Below are positions 10,101 through 39,193 of a stretch of 64,000 nucleotides of DNA, piece after piece (the first letter of the stretch is position 1; each line of letters begins with the position of its first letter). The position numbers were made by a program, and so were the translations under genes. The stretch comes from Perkinsela sp. CCAP 1560/9. Taxonomy: Eukaryota > Protista > Euglenozoa: Kinetoplastea. A model generated the notes under the pieces. The model did no database searches, had not been told where the DNA came from, and saw only the letters and a list, made by a program, of their open reading frames with translations. The stretch covers positions 372,001-436,000 of the forward strand of contig CBFFSA010000005.1 of assembly GCA_965644495.1 (NCBI GenBank), written 5' to 3'.

Positions 10101-11285
10101 ATGGGTATTGATGGACTCAGCAAAGTAATCGCGGAGAAGGCCATTCACGGGTTGAAAAAGCAGGACATCAAAAGTTACTTTGGTCGTCGCATTGCTCTGG
10201 ATGCCTCCTGCGCGATCTACCAGTTCCTTATCGCACTAAAAGGCTTCTCCGAGGGTCAGGGTACGGAACTCACCAATGAGGCCGGGGAGGTGACCTCCCA
10301 CCTTGTGGGGCTCTGGAGCCGCACACTTCGAATGGTCAGCGAGGGGATTAAACCGATTTACGTGTTTGATGGCAAGCCTCCCGACATGAAGTCGCATGAG
10401 ATCTCCCGGAGGAACAAACTCGCGGCGGATGCGGCCACCGGGTTGCAAGTCGCGACTGAGTTAAAAGATGACGCCATGATGGAGCGCATGAGCAAACGCA
10501 TGGTGCGCGTCACCCGGGAGCAGAACGAGGAGTGTAAGAAACTGCTACGGCTGATGGGGATGCCTGTGGTGGAGGCGCCGGAGGAGGCGGAGGCCCAGTG
10601 CGTAGAGCTTGTCCGCGGGGGCAAGGCGTGGGCCGTGGGGACGGAGGACATGGATGCCCTGACGTTTGGCGCCACGGTTATGCTGCGTCACCTGAACTAT
10701 TCCCAGTCCGGTGGGATTATGGAGTACCATCTGGAGGAGGTGCTGCGTGATCTGAAGTTGACCCGGGAGCAGTTTATTGACTTTTGTGTGCTGCTTGGGT
10801 GTGATTACACTGGGAAGGTTGCGGGGATAGGTCCCGTGCGAGCGCTGGAGGGAATACTTCAATATGGGAGTATGGAAAAGCTATTGGAGAACTTAGATCC
10901 GGAGAAACATCCATGGACGCCGGAAAACTTTAATTATGTCGCCGCTCGAAGGCTTTTTCAAAACCCAGTTGTGAATAAGGCAGAGGATTTGCTCATAGAT
11001 TTTACTGAGCCCGACGTCGAAGGACTAAAAGAATTCCTTGTCAAGGAAAAATTATTTTCTGAAGAACGCGTATCGCGCGGTATCCAAAAATTAATGGATG
11101 CGCGGAAGACGAAGACTCAAGGTCGGTTGGATACTTTTTTTAAGACTGCCCACAAGATTTCATCAACCCCCTTCGGAGGGGAGGATGAGAAAAAAAACAA
11201 GCGAACTACGAAGGCGTCACTTCCCTCAGGAAAGCTTGTTAAGAAAGGACATGCGGGAGGAAAGAAAGGAGTTGCAAAAAACTAA
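10101..11285 (+). CDS. FEN1: Flap endonuclease 1
   Basis: MGIDGLSK, YVFDGKPP, EAEAQC, EDMDALTFG, LLGCDY and PIP box QGRLDTFF. Confidence 0.97.
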   Translation: MGIDGLSKVIAEKAIHGLKKQDIKSYFGRRIALDASCAIYQFLIALKGFSEGQGTELTNEAGEVTSHLVGLWSRTLRMVSEGIKPIYVFDGKPPDMKSHEISRRNKLAADAATGLQVATELKDDAMMERMSKRMVRVTREQNEECKKLLRLMGMPVVEAPEEAEAQCVELVRGGKAWAVGTEDMDALTFGATVMLRHLNYSQSGGIMEYHLEEVLRDLKLTREQFIDFCVLLGCDYTGKVAGIGPVRALEGILQYGSMEKLLENLDPEKHPWTPENFNYVAARRLFQNPVVNKAEDLLIDFTEPDVEGLKEFLVKEKLFSEERVSRGIQKLMDARKTKTQGRLDTFFKTAHKISSTPFGGEDEKKNKRTTKASLPSGKLVKKGHAGGKKGVAKN

Positions 11286-13903: not shown

Positions 13904-14315
13904 TATCTGAACGTTTTTAGAAATATACCTTAATTCAATGACAAACATGGCATTTCGCTCTTTAATTTTATTTCTTAAAAGCTAAGCTTGAAAACAGGAA
14001 TCTGTAACATGAAAAATGCATTCCAATATGAACTTAAAATTGTCGCACTGGACTCTATGGTTAAACCTGCAGTTGTGCATAGTGGACATTCAGTAAGCTC
14101 TATCTGTTTTCTCTTTTCTTATGATTATTGATGTATCAAAAAAGAGTTGTACTCAACACACAGCACCAATAACAAGCCTCCTACATTGTAACAGTTTACC
14201 ATCCCCCACTAACCACGCTAACTTCCACAGAAAACTTTCTTTTTTTCTTTTTTGTCTCAGCCTTTTTACTTTCTAACTTCCCCACCACCCCCTTCACCTC
14301 CATGAACCCTCCTAC

Positions 14316-15497
14316 ATGAACCCACCTCACCTCTCTACTCTCCTCTTCGCACTCACTCTCCTCCTCCCGGTGGCACAACCTTACCACCCTCTTTACCCTC
14401 TAGAGGGCTACTCCTCCCCCGCGGATCCCTCCGAGACCCATCCCCCTTCTCATCCTGAGGAAGACCAGCCGCCCCCCTCCCTCCCTCCCCCCACAGGCAT
14501 CCACGAGGAGGACTACTTCGGTTCCGACGGGTACAAGTACGTCACCCCGAGCCCACGCGCCCAGGAAACCCGGAAAGCGCGAAAAGCAGCAGCTGCTGCT
14601 GCGCAAAAAGAAAAACAAAAAGATAAGGAAGAAGCCAACAAAGATAAGAAAGAATCCAACAAAGATAAGAAAGAAGCCAACCAAGATAAGAAAGAAGCCA
14701 ACAAAGATAAGAAAGAAGCCAACCAAGATAAGAAAGAAGCCAACCAAGATAAGAAAGAAGCCAACCAAGATAAGAAAGAAGCCAACCAAGATAAGAAAGA
14801 AGCCAACCAAGATAAGGAGGCAGAAGAAAACCATAAAACAACAACAACAACAGCAACAACAACCCCATTTTCGAACCCAAAAGAAAGCCACTACGCGGTC
14901 GACACCAACGTGTTGCATTACCCGTTCCCCGATGGGGCGGCTCTCCCGGTGGTGGCGCCCGGGGCCGCGGGGGATGAGGACATGGAGGAGATGGATCTGT
15001 TCTCGGATCTCACCCTGGAGAGCGCGGCGCCGTACTTCCCCCCACTCCCGCGGGCGAGAGGGGGGAGGAACCGGGAGGCGGGGAGGGTGCGGGCGAAGAC
15101 GATTTATGAGTACCTGGAGGATATTATCCACGAGCGGCTGCGGAGGTGTAGTCGACGGTGTAAGTGCTGGGGGTATGACATATGGCTCGGGTCGCTTCCG
15201 GGGGAGGCCAGGGGGTGGGTGACGGGGAAGAGCTACCGACGGATTCTGCAGGAGACGCATCTGCAGATGAGGGACCGACTGGATATGTGTGGGTGTTCCA
15301 TGTATGTGGTGTGTCGTCACCTGCCGGAGAGTGTGCTCGCCAGGCATGTGAAGGATGAGGAGTATATTGTGTATGAGGATGTGTACCGTGAGCTGCAGTG
15401 GGTGGATCGTATGATACGCAAGAGCGTGGGCCTGTGCTGTTATGCGAAACAGGGTAACGTGAACGGGTATGAGAAGAAAATATACGCGGTATTGTAG
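14316..15497 (+). CDS. Secreted/surface hypothetical protein with heptad KKEANQD repeats, a Thr tract and a Cys-containing C-terminal domain
   Basis: Signal peptide LSTLLFALTLLLPVAQP; about 9 copies of KKEAN(Q/K)D; TTTTTATTT. Confidence 0.7.
   Translation: MNPPHLSTLLFALTLLLPVAQPYHPLYPLEGYSSPADPSETHPPSHPEEDQPPPSLPPPTGIHEEDYFGSDGYKYVTPSPRAQETRKARKAAAAAAQKEKQKDKEEANKDKKESNKDKKEANQDKKEANKDKKEANQDKKEANQDKKEANQDKKEANQDKKEANQDKEAEENHKTTTTTATTTPFSNPKESHYAVDTNVLHYPFPDGAALPVVAPGAAGDEDMEEMDLFSDLTLESAAPYFPPLPRARGGRNREAGRVRAKTIYEYLEDIIHERLRRCSRRCKCWGYDIWLGSLPGEARGWVTGKSYRRILQETHLQMRDRLDMCGCSMYVVCRHLPESVLARHVKDEEYIVYEDVYRELQWVDRMIRKSVGLCCYAKQGNVNGYEKKIYAVL
14620..14817 (+). repeat. 21-bp coding minisatellite
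   Basis: (AAGATAAGAAAGAAGCCAAC[C/A])n, about 9 units. Confidence 0.95.
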
Positions 15498-16299: not shown

Positions 16300-19028
<2,729 letters not shown>

Positions 19029-20975: not shown

Positions 20976-22742
20976 ATGCAAGAAGTACGTGAAACATCCT
21001 TGTGGCATGAGAAGTCTTTTCGCATTACGTCTTTGACGCTAGTTATCACAGGTTTGCCGACGGAATACCTCCGAAGTGTTCATTGTTTGCGACAGGCCTT
21101 TGAAGTGTTTGGTGGAGTAGAGTCCGCTAAAGTTCTTTCGCACGGCGAGGGTCGCTTTCCGAAGCCTGTTGCATACTTAACGATGAGAGATCAAAAAGAA
21201 TTTAATGCAGTGCTGGCCATGGGTGTGGTTCCTTTATTTGGTCAGCTATGTCGCGTGACTGAATTTTCTAGTTCACTCTATGCCACTAGTCAGGGGAGTA
21301 GCTACGGAGAGTATACCGCAGAAAAGCATTACGCTTTAACCGCTAAGCAGTACTCCGTCGATGGCGAAAACATTGTAAAAGAGGCTGTGGAAAGCGCTGA
21401 ACTACGTGATTCAATGAAAAATGAAACGCAAACTCGAGAGAGTGAGAGAGAACACATACATGACCCCTCCTTGGCGAAAACGCATCATTCGAAGCAAGTT
21501 GAGCATCCGTCCGACACGCCTCAATTTCCCCGATGGGAAGACGACAAATTATCCCCCCTAGTACATCGTAAAGTCGTTGTGCTACGCAATTCATCGTCCT
21601 CTAAGCAACCTGCACATAAGGTACTGTCACGAACCCCACTAGCTGCGATAAGCCGTATTTTTCGAAACCTCTGGAACACCAGTGCTTCGGTCCCGGGTCC
21701 CGTCTCCAAGAGCCCTCCCTCGGGGAAGCGATTTACGGTGGCTACATGGAACACATTGTACCCTAAATTTACCTCCGCGTGTCGTCAATATTGCCCGGAT
21801 CAGTACCTGCGCTGGCGAGAGCACCGTGCCCCTCGCGTGCTCGCTGCCATACGCGAACTCCGGCCCGCGATCCTGGCGCTCCAGGAGGTGGGCGAACGCA
21901 AATCTTCGGACTACCGCTCCTTTTACGCCCAGCTCGAACGCGAGGGCTACGCCCTGTGTGTCGTCCCTAAAGTCATCTCCGAATCCACCGCCTCTGTCGG
22001 AGGCCGTGACAGCATCTGTCTCGCCTACCTTGTTGACCAATTCCTCCCCGTCGAGGCCTTCGGCACCAAGGGATTCCAAATCATCATGCTCCCCCCCACC
22101 AACTCCCACGTCGGGTGTATTGCCGCCCTCCAACACCGTACCACCCAACGTTACGTCATCGCCGCCACCTCCCACCTTAAAGCGGACAAACTCGAAGAAG
22201 ACACCCGCAAAGTCCAACTCCAAGCCTTACTCCATAAAGTCGCGGAGGCCAACCGCAAGGTCCTCTCCCTTCACCAAGACGACTTTGGCGGTCGCTTGTC
22301 TTCCCGCTCCACCCCCCGGGCCCCCCCACCCCCCTCCCCCCTCCCCCCGTGCGACGCGGTCATCCTCGGGGACTTTAACTCCGAGCCGCGCTGGGGTCTG
22401 CTGCGGGCCGCGACCTCCGCCGCGCTGTGCGCGCCGCTCGGGGGGCTACGGGAGGTCTACAGCGACCACGCCCCCGTGGCGTTCTTCGACAAGCAGTACA
22501 CCTGCCTGATGCCCCACACCCAGGACCAGGTGGACTACGTGTTCCACACGACGGGGCTGGAGGCGACCCGGCTGCTGCGGGTCCCGAGTAACCGCGACGT
22601 GGTGGCGGTGTCCCGGCGTGACTTTATGGGCCACGCCCGGGCGGGGGAGGAGAGGACGGAGCACCTCCCGACCCCGTCCTACCCCTCGGACCATATTCTG
22701 CTGTGGGCGGAGTTTGGGTTCGGGGGGGAGGGGGGGAGGTGA
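20976..22742 (+). CDS. RRM + EEP (CCR4/nocturnin/Angel/PDE12-like) nuclease
   Basis: N-terminal RRM-like LVITGLP...FEVFGGVESAKV...AYLTM; VATWNTL, LALQEV, TSHLKA, ILGDFNSEP, VDYVF and YPSDH. Confidence 0.88.
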   Translation: MQEVRETSLWHEKSFRITSLTLVITGLPTEYLRSVHCLRQAFEVFGGVESAKVLSHGEGRFPKPVAYLTMRDQKEFNAVLAMGVVPLFGQLCRVTEFSSSLYATSQGSSYGEYTAEKHYALTAKQYSVDGENIVKEAVESAELRDSMKNETQTRESEREHIHDPSLAKTHHSKQVEHPSDTPQFPRWEDDKLSPLVHRKVVVLRNSSSSKQPAHKVLSRTPLAAISRIFRNLWNTSASVPGPVSKSPPSGKRFTVATWNTLYPKFTSACRQYCPDQYLRWREHRAPRVLAAIRELRPAILALQEVGERKSSDYRSFYAQLEREGYALCVVPKVISESTASVGGRDSICLAYLVDQFLPVEAFGTKGFQIIMLPPTNSHVGCIAALQHRTTQRYVIAATSHLKADKLEEDTRKVQLQALLHKVAEANRKVLSLHQDDFGGRLSSRSTPRAPPPPSPLPPCDAVILGDFNSEPRWGLLRAATSAALCAPLGGLREVYSDHAPVAFFDKQYTCLMPHTQDQVDYVFHTTGLEATRLLRVPSNRDVVAVSRRDFMGHARAGEERTEHLPTPSYPSDHILLWAEFGFGGEGGR

Positions 22743-23085
22743 GAGAAGGGGGGAAGGGGTGAAAAAAGGGGATAAAAAGAGAACACAGAGGTGGAGAAGA
22801 AGAGATGGAGATGTTTTCAATGTCTTGAAGGCATGAGCAAGAGCACACGTTCTTGATAGCATGAGCGAAAGAAGGTTGGATGAGTGCATTCGTTTTCAAA
22901 GAAATATTACGTGCCTTTCTAGTTTAGTTCATTTTTAGCATTAAAAGCTGCTTTTATAGCGAAGTGAACAGCACACTACTTAATTTTTACCATGTTTCGA
23001 ATGATGAGTTGTTGAACAGGAAATGTGCAATAAACTCAGTATTTCTTTTTTAGATACTTTTTTCTACAATATTTCAGCACGACGC

Positions 23086-29822: not shown

Positions 29823-30929
29823 ATGAGCTACTCGTCTACCGAGTTACCTCCTTCGCAGACGTCTTGCACGGAATCCTACAATTGTTCTCCACCAAGTCTT
29901 GAACTGGATCATCAAAATATATCCCGCTCCAGACCTCGAAGGCAGCGTCGGTCGCGTTATTCTCGAATTCCTCTAACGGGGCAAGGAAAAGATACTCGTG
30001 AAGCCGCTCCCGCCAATGCGGAATCTTATCCACCAACACCTTATCTTACATCTTACGGCGAGCCTTTCGAAGATTTAATTTTTCAGCTGCAGCAGGCACA
30101 AGATCATGTCGCTCACTTGCAGCAATGCTGCATGGCCTACGAAGCCAAAATTCAGGACCTCGAATATTGCGCTCAACAATCTGCACGAGGTACGAATTCC
30201 GCGTCGTTTTCAACTGCTTGTATTTCTCACGCACGGATCGAACCTTCTTGCGAAGATTCGCAGGACAAGATGTCTTTGTTCGGTAGGAAAATTAAAAATA
30301 ACACAGTTTCATCTGTGCGACTTACCGAAACAGGTAATCACGATATAAAAAATAGCATACAGCGCATGAAGAAATCTACTCTTGATGCTGCCACAGACGT
30401 ACTTGGTCTCCCGCAAGCTGTCCCGTTAGAAGATCAAATGGTTTTTCACACCTTGGTTGACCTTGGAAATCTTCATCCTATCCAAATCAACCTTTATAAA
30501 AACGTCAGCCCCATGTTACAAACCCAAGACACCTACGCCCGAGCCATCTTCGAACACTGTGACGATGTCTGCAACCTTCTTCCCACCTTGAAACCCAATT
30601 TTACCTTTGGTTATGAGGTCTCTCAATCCTGGTACAGCGCGGACGACTCCCTCTCCGAGGACAGTCTCGAGGACTTTGCATCCTTCTCCCTACGCGGCAG
30701 CGCACCGCCTGCCCACCCCTCACAGTTTCCCTCACAGTCGCCTTCCTCTGCGGCCGTGAGATCCCACGTACGCAGAGTTCCCTCCACCCCTACTGGTTCC
30801 TCCGGGCACAGCTCTTTTCGCAGTGCCGTGACACGCCGACTGACACGCGGGCTCGAGGAGCGCGGGGGGAGGTTTGACACAAAGATACCCTCCCCGAGTA
30901 TCTCCTTTCGTCGCGCGCATCATAAGTGA
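29823..30929 (+). CDS. Hypothetical protein with a short coiled coil and Ser/Pro-rich ends
   Basis: 368-aa ATG ORF; LQQAQDHVAHLQQCCMAYEAKIQDLE. Confidence 0.65.
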   Translation: MSYSSTELPPSQTSCTESYNCSPPSLELDHQNISRSRPRRQRRSRYSRIPLTGQGKDTREAAPANAESYPPTPYLTSYGEPFEDLIFQLQQAQDHVAHLQQCCMAYEAKIQDLEYCAQQSARGTNSASFSTACISHARIEPSCEDSQDKMSLFGRKIKNNTVSSVRLTETGNHDIKNSIQRMKKSTLDAATDVLGLPQAVPLEDQMVFHTLVDLGNLHPIQINLYKNVSPMLQTQDTYARAIFEHCDDVCNLLPTLKPNFTFGYEVSQSWYSADDSLSEDSLEDFASFSLRGSAPPAHPSQFPSQSPSSAAVRSHVRRVPSTPTGSSGHSSFRSAVTRRLTRGLEERGGRFDTKIPSPSISFRRAHHK

Positions 30930-31595
30930 ACGAGATGGAGCCATGGATACGCTCCACGCGTGCGTGTTGGGGGGGGGGGGGGTAAAAAAGAGGTGACTTT
31001 GCTTTTTTTTCTTGGGAATGATACAAGGTGTGAAAAAGAATACAGGATTATCATGTTTTAAAGACTTTTCTTTCTTCTGTATAAGGATGTTTGACTTTTT
31101 TGAAAAAGGTCACTTATCCTCAGTCATGTTTAAGAACGGAAGTTATGATTGTTGCTCAATATTAAGTCCAAAAATAACGTGGTAAAGTAACTCTAAATTC
31201 ATTTTAATTAAATATCTAAGATTTACATGGACAATATGGTGAACTATATTGTTAAGCAAATTTAAAATTTGTAATGACAAGTAAAGTTAAAGACATTCTA
31301 ATTTGTGATTTTAAATTAAGTTTGTAAATATGCTTCTCTGTGGAAAATAAGCGTCCTACTGGGAGTGCTTAAATTGTTTTCATTGGTCAACTTTCGTTGT
31401 CTTCAGTAGAATCTCTAACTCTAAGGTGTTTCTTGCAGGATAGATGTACATACACTCTAATTTTTTATGAACCCCTTCTTGCCGAATAGCATATTCAGAA
31501 AACACGTCGCGTGACCTTATTTTTTTTAAATGTCGTCTTAATTTACTGATCGATACAACATTTCTTTACATAAAACTATACGTTCCACACACAAA

Positions 31596-32935: not shown

Positions 32936-34681
32936 ATGGTTAGTGCTAAAGATTTTTCGCTGCTACGACAGGCCATATCGAAACGGGATTGCGATGCTGC
33001 TCTATTGTATCTTCGAAACTGGCTCAGTTCCACATCGAAAGCGCCTTCAACTTTGGTTTCTGACATGAAATTTGCCGAAGAAATCACTCTGAAAACAAAA
33101 AAGCGGGTAAAAGATCCTGCGCAAGAAGTAATGTTGCCTCCTTCATTAGTTTCAGCAGCCCTGCATTTATGTACATCTACGAACCGATGGTCGGACGCCA
33201 GTTCATTGTTACAAGATCTACTAAGGGTACATGATTTTCAATGGAATTCCTCAATTTTAGCCAAGAGCATTACTATCTTATGTAGAAATAGCGCTTTCTC
33301 CGGGGGTAACTCCGGCTATTCGTCTTCAGAAAACGAGGAGAAAAAGGGATTATCTCGAGAAAATGCTTTACCGCACGTGAAAAATGAATCCTGCTTAAAA
33401 AACGTGTTAGCAATATTGAAGAAGGCCCATTTTGGAAGTCTTGGGGAGGGTTCTGCTATTCAAAGACGGCATTTTGCTCCTTTTTTTGAAATTTGCAGCA
33501 GCTTTGCTTTGCTGAACGAGGCGCGTGCATTCGCACGAAAGGCTAGCGTTGTTTTGGATCAAGTAGACTACGCTTGCATGCTCAAACTTCCTTTTGCGGG
33601 TCAGTTGCTTCACGGCATTCTTCAAGATATGAGAGAAGACATCCCATTGGTTTCGCATGACTTTGTCGATGCCGTTTTCTACGCGTGTAGAGATTCTGAG
33701 CCTGACAAGAACATTAAGCCAAATGCATCCGAGTGCACCATACGAGATGAGGTGGAAGTGGTGTTTCCCGCAGCATATGAACAAAAAGATACCGATATCC
33801 TTTGTAGGAGGCCATCCGAACAACATTTCGGTTACTGTAGTCATTGCAAAGGCGAATTACAGTTATATCCTTTCAGTGAGGAGTATCGTGCACAACTTCT
33901 GGGCGATATTGAGAAAACATTAATACCTGCAGAACTTCCTAATGAGGTCATTTCCAAACTCAGGAAAATGTGCGATGATCGGGTCATTCGAGTGATTATT
34001 GATGGTGCCAACGTAGGCTATTGCGGTCTCTCAGCTTGGGGTGCTGAATCGATTGAATCTCAAAACTTTCGAGAGAAGGAAGAGAACGTGATTGAAAAAA
34101 TTCAGGACGAAGATCGTAAGTGGAGAAAGCGCGCTGCAACAAAAAAGGTTCCTGCTCGATTGGAGCATATTCAAGCAGTGTGTGAGGCGATAGAAAATGC
34201 GAAGCTGGGAACTCCTCTTATTGTTTTTCACGAACGTCACACGGCCAAAGAGGCCCTTCAGCCCCAGTATCAGGAGATGGTACGCAATTGGCGTGAAAGG
34301 GGCATTTTATACACCTCGCCCGAGGGGGTTTGCGACGATTATTTTTGGCTCTATGCTGCTGTGTACCTTAGCCAGCCGAGTCGTCCTGCATATGTGATTA
34401 CTAATGATAAAATGAGAGATCACCACTACGCGATGCTTTCTCAAAAATCCTTTTTGAGATGGAAACAGACGAGTCAAATCTTTTTTGGGATTTTAGCTCC
34501 TGGGATGAGAGCGCGGTTGCAAGTGCCTCGTTCGTACTCTTTTTGCATGCAATATGAGGAAAGCAACAGGCATTGGCATCTACCGTACCGCGATCGAGTA
34601 GATGACCAAATAAGATGGTTATGCGTTGAAATACCACAGCAGACGAGTGATACAACAAAAAATGACACACCCGCTGTGTAG
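32936..34681 (+). CDS. PRORP: Protein-only RNase P (PPR + NYN)
   Basis: CSHC zinc site, [33 protein letters not shown]; first ATG at 32936. Confidence 0.92.
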
Positions 34682-34985
34682 GAATTTCTTAAAATCCTTG
34701 CACATCTGTTGCCCATTACGTTCCTCTAATCACTTTTTACTGATTATTACGTTGTTTGGTCTTTGTAGGCTTCCAATTTTGCGATCACATCATAGCAAAG
34801 TGAACATGTACAGTGCTTCGAGTACACTGCGAGTTTCTAGTACAATGAGATTCTATGCAGTTTTCAAAGCACTAAATCACACACAGTACTTGAAATATAA
34901 GTATCTCATACATCACAGTTTGAAAATCCTAAGTGCTCTTTTTCTTGTTTATCGGGGTGCTTACGTCAATGTAACTTCACAAAGA

Positions 34986-36053
34986 ATGGACGAACAAAGT
35001 AGAGAACCGGGGGTTGCCCTTATTACTGGGATATCGGGTCAGGATGGCTCCTACCTCGCCGAGCTTCTCCTCGAGAAAGGCTACACCGTCCATGGCCTTG
35101 TACGCCGCACCTCCACCTTTTCCACCTCCCGCATCAACCACATCTACACCCACCCCCGTCTCCACCTCCACTACGGCGACCTCACCGACACCCTCCCCCT
35201 CCTCCACCTCATCACCTCCCTCCGCCCCACCGAGATCTACAACCTCGGCGCCCAGAGCCACGTCAAAGTCAGCTTCGACCTCCCCGAGCACACCGCCAAC
35301 GTCAACGCCCTCGGCTGCCTCCGTCTCCTCGAGGCCCTCCGTCTCTCCCCCCTCCCCCCCGCCCACTGCCGGTTCTACCAAGCCTCCACCTCCGAGCTCT
35401 ACGGGCAACCCACCGAGAGCCCCCAAACCGAGTCCACCCCCTTCCGCCCCCGCTCCCCCTACGCCTGCGCGAAGCTCCACGCGTACTGGTCCACGGTCGT
35501 CCACCGCCACGCCTACGGGCTGTTCGCCTGCAACGGGGTTCTGTTCAACCACGAGTCCCCGCGCCGCGGGGCGACCTTTGTCACGCGCAAGATCGTCCGC
35601 GCCGCGGTGCGTATCGCCGCGGGGCGACAACACGAGCTGTGTCTGGGGAATCTGGACGCGAAAAGGGACTGGGGGCACGCGAAGGACTATGTGGAGGGGA
35701 TGTGGCGGATGCTGCAGCAGGAGGGGCCGGGGGATTACGTACTCGCGACGGGGAGGCAGTACGCGGTGCGGGAGTTTTGTGTGGCGGTGTTTGAAAGGGT
35801 GGGGATAGGGCTGCGGTGGGAGGGGGAGGGGGTGGGTGAGGTGGGGGTGGAGACGGGGGGGACAGGGCGGGTACTGGTTCGGGTCACGGCGAAGTATTTT
35901 CGACCGGCTGAGGTGGATTCGCTTCTGGGTGATCCGTCTCATGCGGAGAAAACATTGGGCTGGAAGCGAAATTTCGATTTTTATGGTTTGGTTGACGATA
36001 TGGTGTCGAGTGAGATTGCCATAGAGAAATCGGGTCAAGACTGTTGGTCTTAG
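34986..36053 (+). CDS. GMD: GDP-mannose 4,6-dehydratase
   Basis: [58 protein letters not shown] and RDWGHAKDY. Confidence 0.97.
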
Positions 36054-36172
36054 GCTATTTTTCGTACCAACTATTGGCTACCCAAAGACTTCTGTGGAGT
36101 GTACTCAACACAAAATTTTCAATACACAGCGCGTGATTCATGTGGTCATAGTCGAATATTGTGCGATTGGGG

Positions 36173-36249
36173 GGTAGGCTTCCGGTGGGCCTAGGGGGTG
36201 TACACCAATTGTTATCCCCTTCATAGTAGCGCCCAACGGTAGTTACCCC
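36173..36249. other. Long imperfect hairpin (MITE relic or small structured RNA)
   Basis: GGGGTAGGCTTCCGGTGGGC ... GCCCAACGGTAGTTACCCC, with inner AGGGGGT/ATCCCCT. Confidence 0.5.
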
Positions 36250-36495
36250 TTTAAACTCTCAGAAAATTGTGCAGTACGAAAAAAAATGGTAATCTCATGT
36301 GGATTAGCTGATGGATATAGTACATGTATTTCTGCCCTCTCTAAGTCTACCTTTCACGCTTATTTTTCACTTGGCTTTCTGAATAAAAAAAAGTGTGATG
36401 TACACGCTTGGTAATTACACCATGAGCATTGATGTTTAGGATAATATAGTGTTATACTTTTAGATCTTGCATCGTGTAAATGAAGGGAGACGTTT

Positions 36496-37164
36496 ATGAG
36501 CTCTGATTTTGAAGATAAATTCTATCTTTCAAAGATTCTGCTGGAGGCGCACTCTCAGCAAGTAGAGCAGGCGGTTTCAAATTCAAAATCGGCGTCTCAC
36601 TCCCTCGATTCACAACTATTAACGTATCTTTCGGCACGTGGACGTGAATGCGAAGAGAAACTGAACGAAGTTGCAGAAATATTACCAACAATGGTGAGTG
36701 GAGCTCAGTCAAGAATACAGTGGACAGCAAGGCTTACCATGTTACACGAGGAATGCGAAAGGTTGCGCGGTATGCTGCAAAGCTTGGAAATTAAGAAACG
36801 TAAAAACGACAGAATTATACGCAGCAGAGAGGCCTTTAGACTCTCGGAACAAGATAAAAAGGTCTTGGAGGATTCATACGGGCCCGAATCGGAACTTCTC
36901 TCCGAGTATGACTCTCTTGTCCACACACAAAAGGAAGTTCAATCAATGACTTCCGAAAGTATTGCGGTACTCAATGCATTAAAGTCGCAGCGTGAGGGAA
37001 TTCTTCACTCGCAAGACAGACTCAGTAAACTTTCCGCGTCATCTAGTTTTTCAACACAACTCCTCCGCAATATTATGAGTACGATACATTTAGATCGTAT
37101 TTTCTTGTATTTCGGAATGATAATCATCACTCTTTTATTGCTTTTCATTTACATGAGAACTTAG
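36496..37164 (+). CDS. Qb-SNARE (membrin/Bos1/GOSR-like)
   Basis: Helical N-terminal domain, SNARE heptads with LKSQREGI, single C-terminal TM. Confidence 0.8.
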   Translation: MSSDFEDKFYLSKILLEAHSQQVEQAVSNSKSASHSLDSQLLTYLSARGRECEEKLNEVAEILPTMVSGAQSRIQWTARLTMLHEECERLRGMLQSLEIKKRKNDRIIRSREAFRLSEQDKKVLEDSYGPESELLSEYDSLVHTQKEVQSMTSESIAVLNALKSQREGILHSQDRLSKLSASSSFSTQLLRNIMSTIHLDRIFLYFGMIIITLLLLFIYMRT

Positions 37165-37306
37165 TGTTTGTAATTTGTGTATAAATCTTCAATTCGTTCC
37201 TCGTCGTGATCTTCAAAAATAGTGTTTTCCTGTATTTCGGTATCTTTTTTCGTGGTACAATAATTTTCATTCAACTACTATCTGCTTAAGTACACGAATT
37301 TCGACT

Positions 37307-39193
37307 ATGGGACGGGAACGCGTCTTTCTTTTGAGTCCACACGGCACTTTTTGCGCCATTTTGGAGCACTTTGAGGACCCGGAAGAGTCGGATGAAATTC
37401 AAATAATCACTCCACAGGGAAAATTCTACGCTCCAGTGCGTCCTCCAGTGAGATTAAAAGGTCTTGTTCGAGACGATCTGCACAGTGCTTCTGATTCAAC
37501 ATCGAGTTGTATTTTTGCCCTTCCACAAGAAACGAAAAAGCGTTCAATATCAATTTCCAGAAAAATCAGTACTGCAGCTTGGGATAGCGACTCGTCTCTT
37601 CTTGTGTGTTTCACTGATGCGAGCGTCTGGTCTTTGTTTTCGTCAAGTCTTGATAGGTTTGAGCAAGGGGCTGGCGATTATTACTTTCAATGGACAAAGG
37701 ATCCGATACACACTTTAGAGGGCGGATCGCAGTTCGACGGAAATCTTTTTGTTTGTCAAATAGGAATTGCACCAAGACTACGGAAACCATTGGGTAGTAT
37801 TCCACCTTTTTCATACGTGGATACCAATTTTGCTCTCTGGTGGCATGATGGCAAGAAAGTACATGAGCTCCACAGTTCGCAAGCAGTTCCTATTACTCAT
37901 ATCGCTGCGAGTCCTAGTGGAAAGTTGGTCGCTATAGCTACAGAAAAATACATGCGAATATACAGTACCAGAAAACGCAAGAAAGTGTATTCTCTGAAAT
38001 GGCGCAATAAATCTTTGATGGCCCGACTTTTCTCTCCCTTATCACTTCTTCACATGGTTGACGACAGCCACCTCGCCCTGGGAACATTGGACGGTGAGGT
38101 TGCACTATGGAATACAAAGAGTTGCGAAACACCAAAGTTTATGTACAGTGGCTCCATGCGGTCCTTTTTGACGAGAAATGAGGCCCCGTGTGATTTGCCC
38201 TCACCTTCCTCTAATTTTCTTGTTGTTGCAAATGGTCGCTACTGCATGGTGGCTAAATTGGGGGAAGAAGCGCAAATACTTGATCTTGTTCTTCAGAAAG
38301 TAGAATCAGGACCAAGCTTACCCGACTCATTATTCGGCCTAAATGATAAAGTGCATTCTGAAAAGCCTTTTTTGCAGTGCAACAAAATTTCTCTTTTGAA
38401 AGACCAAAGCGGAATGTACTGGAACCCAAAATTTCACAGTATCGAATCTTTTTCCTGGGGAATTCTTCAGGAAACAAACTCTACGAATTTACTCACTGTT
38501 TCCGAGACTCCGTCCAATAAACTATCGGATGTCGCCTCTTTTGCGTCTACGGGGCTTCATATCTCAAATGTCTTTACCGATACAGTTGAGTACAAAGACA
38601 TAAAAGAAGATTTGAGCCAACTATTACGGGAAGAAAGCGGAGAGTCCATGTCTTTGGAGTGCCTTTCCGCAACAGCACCGGAACCTATGGATATTTCTTC
38701 GGTAAAAAGGCTATTTAGCCTGATTCACCTCAATCGTGGTCAATTGTTTCGTGAGCAGAATCTTCGCGCTCTATCTCTGTTCGAGTCCATTCGTGTTGCT
38801 CGGGCTTCTACCCGCATAGCGACGATATCTTGGGTTCATTTCATTCGATCAGTACTTTGGCTCAGAGCCCTCCTTCACGCTCGTCCTGTGATGTCATCTC
38901 ACCACTCTACAAAAATACTTGAAAGAACAAGCGCGGTGCTTTCTCTGAGTAAGCAAGTTACATGCGCCAGCATAGCAAGCTCCCTACGACGTTCGCAAGG
39001 GCTGTTGGACATTTTTGGGGTCACACGACCTAATTCTGTTTCTTATGAAGACATTGCATGTTCTTCATTCATAAAGAAAGCGATCACGATGAGCAATGAC
39101 GCTTCGAATAATTCCAGAAAAGCAGTTATGTCAGAAACTACTTTTCACTCCTCTCCAATATCTGCAATGAAAAGGAGGCGTAGGAAGAGCTAA
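37307..39193 (+). CDS. WD40-like hypothetical protein
   Basis: ITHIAASPSGKLVAIA and LALGTLDGEVALWN; basic NLS-like tail. Confidence 0.7.
   Translation: MGRERVFLLSPHGTFCAILEHFEDPEESDEIQIITPQGKFYAPVRPPVRLKGLVRDDLHSASDSTSSCIFALPQETKKRSISISRKISTAAWDSDSSLLVCFTDASVWSLFSSSLDRFEQGAGDYYFQWTKDPIHTLEGGSQFDGNLFVCQIGIAPRLRKPLGSIPPFSYVDTNFALWWHDGKKVHELHSSQAVPITHIAASPSGKLVAIATEKYMRIYSTRKRKKVYSLKWRNKSLMARLFSPLSLLHMVDDSHLALGTLDGEVALWNTKSCETPKFMYSGSMRSFLTRNEAPCDLPSPSSNFLVVANGRYCMVAKLGEEAQILDLVLQKVESGPSLPDSLFGLNDKVHSEKPFLQCNKISLLKDQSGMYWNPKFHSIESFSWGILQETNSTNLLTVSETPSNKLSDVASFASTGLHISNVFTDTVEYKDIKEDLSQLLREESGESMSLECLSATAPEPMDISSVKRLFSLIHLNRGQLFREQNLRALSLFESIRVARASTRIATISWVHFIRSVLWLRALLHARPVMSSHHSTKILERTSAVLSLSKQVTCASIASSLRRSQGLLDIFGVTRPNSVSYEDIACSSFIKKAITMSNDASNNSRKAVMSETTFHSSPISAMKRRRRKS

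Follow-up and report, generated by a model that had tools for sequence, protein, structure and literature searches.

The window analysed here is a stretch of 64,000 nucleotides (G000:C5:372001-436000) from a genome assembly of 21.0 Mb in 110 contigs. It contains an intronless gene for GDP-mannose 4,6-dehydratase (GMD) on the plus strand at 34986-36053 (Pfam PF16363, GDP_Man_Dehyd, E = 9e-135), whose protein is 61-65% identical to the GMDs of kinetoplastids and other organisms. In the phylogenetic tree of RuvBL2, which was drawn open, the sequence groups with Papus and Apiculatamorpha on a long branch (support 92/99), and judging from this tree the organism is probably an early-branching kinetoplastid. 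We surveyed 264 kb (1.3% of the genome, plus-strand genes only) for compositional islands of the kind found in GMD. All called genes in these 264 kb are on the plus strand and intronless, the few minus-strand open reading frames (ORFs) are mostly shadows of islands, and neither a strand switch nor divergent gene clusters flanking the islands were found in this region. Just 3' of GMD lies a 43-bp dispersed repeat (36166-36208) with a contig depth of ~10-fold; its 16-bp core has 41 exact copies genome-wide, on both strands, and it is possibly a transposon remnant. Another non-coding repeat, G-rich and then C-rich, was seen three times, once inverted, at ~357.1, 502.2 and 524.0 kb of G000:C5 (L012 near 5126, L020 near 6198 and L022 near 8003, respectively) and is probably the end of a mobile element.

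The island in GMD consists of two arms and a core. In the left arm (35047-35465), which bears a drive toward C on the top strand, C occupies 81 of the 89 four-fold degenerate sites (T 5, G 2, A 1) and 31 of the 33 NNY third positions, and G is found at only 9 of 14 NNR positions. In the right arm (35620-35947) it is the bottom strand that is driven to C, which appears as G in the top strand: G 51, T 6, A 5 and C 2 at 64 four-fold sites, G at 17 of 20 NNR positions and C at only 7 of 19 NNY positions. The mixed core between them (35466-35619, ~150 bp; 35453-35603 in a two-box fit) is where both one-strand drives overlap, and 30 of its 32 four-fold sites are G or C (C 17, G 13, T 2). A preliminary description of this DNA had reported a C-to-G skew in the synonymous codons of GMD. 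This skew persists at four-fold sites and is borne out by a switch statistic of 63.3, where 100,000 shuffles within the gene gave at most 30.8. The codons at both ends of the gene (the first 20 and the last ~35) are at background composition, as had been claimed. The right arm had been called G/T-rich; the G stands, whereas T is in fact depleted at four-fold sites (0.09 vs. 0.34) and remains only at sites that bar G.

Two features proposed for the centre of the island fared less well. The palindrome noted near 35557 is present (35557-35571, 7-bp arms), but it is a product of chance and not a signal: it arises in 11% of synonymous resamplings (P = 0.11), because the columns of the underlying HESPRRG motif are invariant and the third positions are GC-rich. 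The centres of the islands are GC-rich but not CpG-rich, with a CpG observed/expected ratio of 0.94 vs. 1.01 in the background, and a CpG island was therefore rejected. A G4-prone stretch is located on the plus strand of the right arm (35822-35846, G4Hunter 2.8) and is mirrored on the minus strand near 35435-35459 (G4Hunter -2.6); both are likely consequences of the drive. Long antisense ORFs run beneath the GMD island (34977-36038, minus strand) and beneath two other islands (17622-18680 and 14400-15347, both minus strand), because GC-rich DNA loses stop codons, and gene callers would take them for genes.

Composition as extreme as this could point to an assembly chimera or foreign DNA. A 12.3-kb contig from an independent run spans 33000-36195 unbroken, crosses both island edges and shows no difference inside the island; therefore, the GMD island is not a chimeric join. 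Foreign origin is contradicted by the protein, which is collinear with kinetoplastid GMD. Imperfect inverted repeats that link the two arms, and a tendency to fold (z = -2.4 relative to coarse shuffles), could suggest templating of one arm by the other through fold-back, but the two arms of an island are no more complementary to each other than to arms of other islands (p = 0.31-0.56), and hairpin templating was rejected. Each of these readings, together with codon selection at the level of the gene (see below), belongs to a group that we consider highly improbable.

Islands of this kind are real and recurrent, which we regard as confirmed. In the 264 kb, 19 islands of ~1 kb each were identified among 109 genes, occupying ~17% of the genes and 8% of the DNA. 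When GC peaks were picked by GC content alone, the switch ran from C to G at 18 of 19, so that its polarity is not random in this region. The mean spacing is ~14 kb (range 1.3-40 kb); thus, recurrence had been correctly described but not an interval of a few kb. All 19 centres are within coding sequences and no more than 575 bp from a CDS end (p ~5e-4), and long genes are mostly without islands. The host genes are mixed and include GMD, RuvBL2, FEN1, 14-3-3, succinyl-CoA ligase beta, a kinase and several orphans. Within the window, sister islands cover the 5' UTR and 5' half of RuvBL2 (17484-18376), the 3' half and 3' UTR of a gene of the exonuclease/endonuclease/phosphatase family (21792-22809) and an ORF without Pfam match (14198-15475); a weaker one covers the 3' end of another ORF without Pfam match (30502-30994), and a weak one lies in a FEN1/XPG-family gene (10241-10851). 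Strength and width vary continuously between islands. In some, the mixed core is very wide (750-1400 bp) or the arms are weak (L004:6500-7530, L010:9690 into L011, L018:1220-2020 and L020:9420 into L021), and these look as if the centre had moved, or as if the island were young or decaying.

No motif shared by the centres of these islands rose above shuffles, and Rfam and sigma-70 scans gave no signal above chance. The homologous GMD and RuvBL2 genes of other kinetoplastids and environmental contigs lack the C-to-G switch, although the best homologues found, 65-73% identical and island-free, do not include a close relative. A literature search, whose incomplete coverage leaves novelty unproven, found no description of the pattern.

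To separate the components of the drive, we used the two-fold sites (NNY and NNR) of 11 clean islands. In left arms, NNY-C rose to 0.80 (background 0.385) and NNR-G fell to 0.285 (background 0.40). In right arms, NNR-G reached 0.88 and NNY-C was 0.386, as in the background (0.385). In the cores both were raised (0.85 and 0.92, respectively). At four-fold sites the ratio of C to G was 608:77 in left arms and 54:391 in right arms. Only one base is favoured in each arm, and the pattern is therefore not GC enrichment plus skew: sites are driven to C on whichever strand runs 5' to 3' toward the centre. This drive removes A, G and T to a similar degree, with transversions to C favoured about as strongly as transitions, and a mirrored A/T skew is absent at four-fold sites. 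The two drives are mirror images of each other, each 400-1400 bp long, and in most islands they overlap by 150-350 bp. They reach 65-90% of silent sites and fade at 500-700 bp from the centre. Slippage beside an existing C or G was rejected, as no clear neighbour effect of that kind was observed.

That the drive acts on DNA position and not on codons is shown by its passage across start and stop codons into UTRs (G is 0.00-0.03 before several ATGs, and C is 0.04-0.09 after several stops) and by the ordinary codon usage of the same genes outside the island, which led us to reject codon selection. Its strength is nearly equal on the coding and template strands (B ~2.0 and 2.5) although all called genes are on the plus strand. 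The polarity found at 18 of 19 peaks, the passage into UTRs and the ordinary codon usage elsewhere in the genes support one part of the preliminary description, a chromosomal footprint that recurs at fixed positions with fixed polarity; it may mark a cis-acting element with a function of its own or be only a scar. The proteins are affected as well, Pro showing a 3.6-fold enrichment in C arms and Gly one of 2.6-fold in G arms. At conserved columns, the divergence of amino acids was not significantly raised (RuvBL2, 15% vs. 10.5%, p = 0.36), and the C-ward direction of the GMD left arm was significant with 14 close homologues (p = 0.005) but failed with a broad set.

Several models of the drive were fitted, with equilibrium assumed and boundaries fitted to the same data. 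A one-parameter fixation bias toward C on one strand gave a deviance of 40.6 on 8 df. Plain GC-biased gene conversion (gBGC; deviance 1161), gBGC with deamination (181-206) and transition-only polymerase error (~600) were rejected. An additive N>C mutation model fitted equally only without a background transition bias. A three-parameter model, in which symmetric gBGC is joined by a loss of C to T and to G from the G-rich strand, also fits well (15-18 on 4 df), but requires two forces that cancel almost exactly at two-fold sites. The residual letters of the strongest blocks were intermediate (0.49) and do not separate conversion from mutation, which composition alone cannot do.

The similar depletion of A, G and T resembles a fixation bias, which could also be produced by selection. 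Outward G-rich strands might thus be kept for a chromosomal function, such as G4 formation, nucleosome positioning or protein loading, and the strong G4 potential would suit such a role. Selection would then be needed on hundreds of single sites per island, and the absence of a common motif at the centres, the homologous GMD and RuvBL2 genes without the pattern and the continuous variation in strength and width all speak against a selected element, which we consider improbable.

The good fit of the three-parameter model is relevant to a bidirectional Pol II start inside the gene, or a site of paired R-loops, which would be the kinetoplastid counterpart of the skewed promoters in CpG islands. 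On either side, the non-template strand (top on the right, bottom on the left) would be displaced, remain single-stranded and lose C by deamination; bypass of abasic sites by dCMP insertion of the Rev1 type would give N>G on these strands, and open chromatin may add ordinary gBGC. The polarity agrees with non-template strands that are G-rich reading outward, and G4-prone clusters lie mainly on the strands that read outward: the top strand has 26 to the right of the centres and 5 to the left, the bottom strand 1 and 38, respectively. The proximity of the centres to CDS ends would also be in keeping with such starts. Three Y-family polymerases are present in the genome, and Rev1 occurs in trypanosomatids (PMC12578213), but a REV1_C profile match was not found in this genome, which is a weak test. 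Transcription would also have to explain the near-equality of sense and antisense arms in 264 kb without a strand switch, and the C loss would have to cancel gBGC almost exactly at two-fold sites. Trypanosome promoters are GT-rich, unlike the islands with their depleted T, which weakens the proposal of a promoter of this type made earlier. Divergent gene clusters on either side, as expected of a divergent strand-switch or GT-rich Pol II start region, were not seen in the 264 kb, where all called genes have one orientation. Overall, we consider an internal Pol II start unlikely.

Exposure of the G-rich strand could also occur at a replication origin. The C-rich strands would then be the first lagging-strand products, and the G-rich lagging templates would stay single-stranded near the bubble, be damaged and be bypassed with dCMP. 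The sign of the islands is that of the classical skew jump at bidirectional origins, and the core resembles an open bubble in that neither strand is spared. On the other hand, replication skews span whole replicons whereas island skews stop at ~500-700 bp, the mirrored A/T skew is absent at four-fold sites, and some neighbouring islands are only 1.3-2.3 kb apart. In addition, origins of T. brucei are intergenic and of reverse polarity (PMC13179062), whereas all 19 island centres are in CDS; the suggestion of an origin in the preliminary description thus lost ground. We regard an origin as rather unlikely.

The profile folded about the centre comprises a break zone and two bounded arms, and therefore has the anatomy of a break hotspot (geometry as in PMC7615360). 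Among the three processes named in the preliminary description (origin, Pol II start and recombination), breakage and recombination fit the shape best, although the known mutation signature of single-stranded DNA is of opposite sign. Our leading reading, put forward tentatively and with somewhat less than even confidence, is that the islands are the long-term scar of a stable site of double-strand-break repair, probably a meiotic (Spo11-type) hotspot. Breaks would fall in the 150-350-bp core, and 5'-to-3' resection would give arms of ~500 nt in which the old 3' tails belong to the top strand in the left arm and to the bottom strand in the right arm. The opposite strands would be newly made, so that the old tails would be the C-rich strands, and mismatches in the arms would be resolved in favour of old-strand C or new-strand G. 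Known hotspot mutagenesis strips C from the old strand and therefore cannot cause the islands. A further possibility, which we hold with more reserve, is a strand-specific biased repair by which mismatches in heteroduplex or from repair synthesis at stable break hotspots are turned into old-strand C whatever the other base. In the simplest chemistry, which is speculative and needs only known components, the new strand would be removed by default unless a MutY/Mig-type glycosylase took out the old base that faces a new G or 8-oxoG; changes of A>C, G>C and T>C would then be confined to the old strand. The route could be either conversion bias between alleles or fixation of repair-synthesis errors. 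It also counts against the break model that the three-parameter model of gBGC and C loss, with another single-stranded geometry, fits as well, and that the extra loss of G at left-arm NNR sites is unpredicted. The latter is better accounted for by exposure of the G-rich strand, through transcription or an origin.

The genome encodes meiotic machinery, including Spo11, Mnd1, two full-length Rad51/Dmc1-family genes and at least four MutS genes; MND1 is apparently lacking in Perkinsela CCAP1560/4. [quoted passage not shown] The search for an OGG_N profile match in the genome was negative, which is weak evidence that OGG1 is absent, and the genome may have kept MutY without it. Two genes of the uracil-DNA glycosylase family are located 12 kb apart (G000:C1 2165731-2166204 and 2177994-2178470). 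MutY removes A and G that are paired with 8-oxoG. The substrates of Mig are T, G and A paired with G, and the specificities of the two enzymes are two residues apart (PMC2714593). Against a glycosylase as the cause, the gBGC of yeast does not stem from base excision repair (PMC3649680).

Allele data from the contigs of three samples provide a hint of recombination at GMD itself. Ten allele differences are clustered within 1.6 kb (33427-35018) amid otherwise monomorphic DNA, ending 29 bp before the left edge of the island, and none occurs at 35019-38000; therefore, a haplotype boundary lies at or inside the island. At eight of the nine strong/weak sites of this tract the assembly has G or C, and both alleles are present in one sample. 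This is a single event, and a boundary would fall in the island by chance about one time in five.

If such strand-specific repair takes place, the sequence would record the break zone and resection length of each hotspot, the islands would form a readable map of kinetoplastid recombination sites, and one glycosylase of widened specificity could be the cause. How GC-biased conversion arises at the molecular level is not settled, and the break sites of kinetoplastid meiosis are, to our knowledge, unmapped. A genome with a strand-resolved and nearly saturating bias would reveal the winning strand and mismatch, and the enzyme could be tested in the tube. Whichever explanation holds, a fixed two-way DNA process operates inside ~17% of genes and shifts amino-acid composition, and studies of codon usage and phylogeny in this lineage will be distorted by it.

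Four known systems resemble the islands in part, although the islands failed tests of membership in each of them. Bidirectional CpG-island promoters of vertebrates are likewise ~1 kb long, GC-rich, of C-left/G-right polarity and prone to G4 and R-loops. Unlike them, the islands have no CpG excess or divergent genes, their centres are inside CDS in a one-directional cluster, and their skew is far stronger. Around mapped origins of T. brucei, base composition is likewise mirror-symmetric and G4 potential is stranded, but these origins are 85-92% intergenic, AT-rich, flanked by poly(dA) upstream and poly(dT) downstream, and G-left/C-right, whereas the islands are intra-CDS, GC-rich and C-left/G-right (PMC13179062). 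gBGC at recombination hotspots also raises GC locally on a kilobase scale, at silent and non-coding sites and with the look of a fixation bias, and this genome has meiotic recombination machinery. The island core resembles plain gBGC, with a weak-to-strong bias symmetric on both strands; in the arms a single base is favoured, with a strong C-versus-G bias, whereas gBGC favours G and C on both strands (PMC3649680). Human meiotic break hotspots have the same two-fold symmetry: the core is symmetric, and the flanks, which are as long as the resection tracts, are strand-asymmetric. These single-stranded flanks lose C (C>N and A>N on the retained strand), predicting G-left/C-right, whereas the island sign is reversed in 18 of 19 and 65-90% of silent sites are affected (PMC7615360). 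Taken together, the islands work like strand-resolved biased repair at fixed sites.
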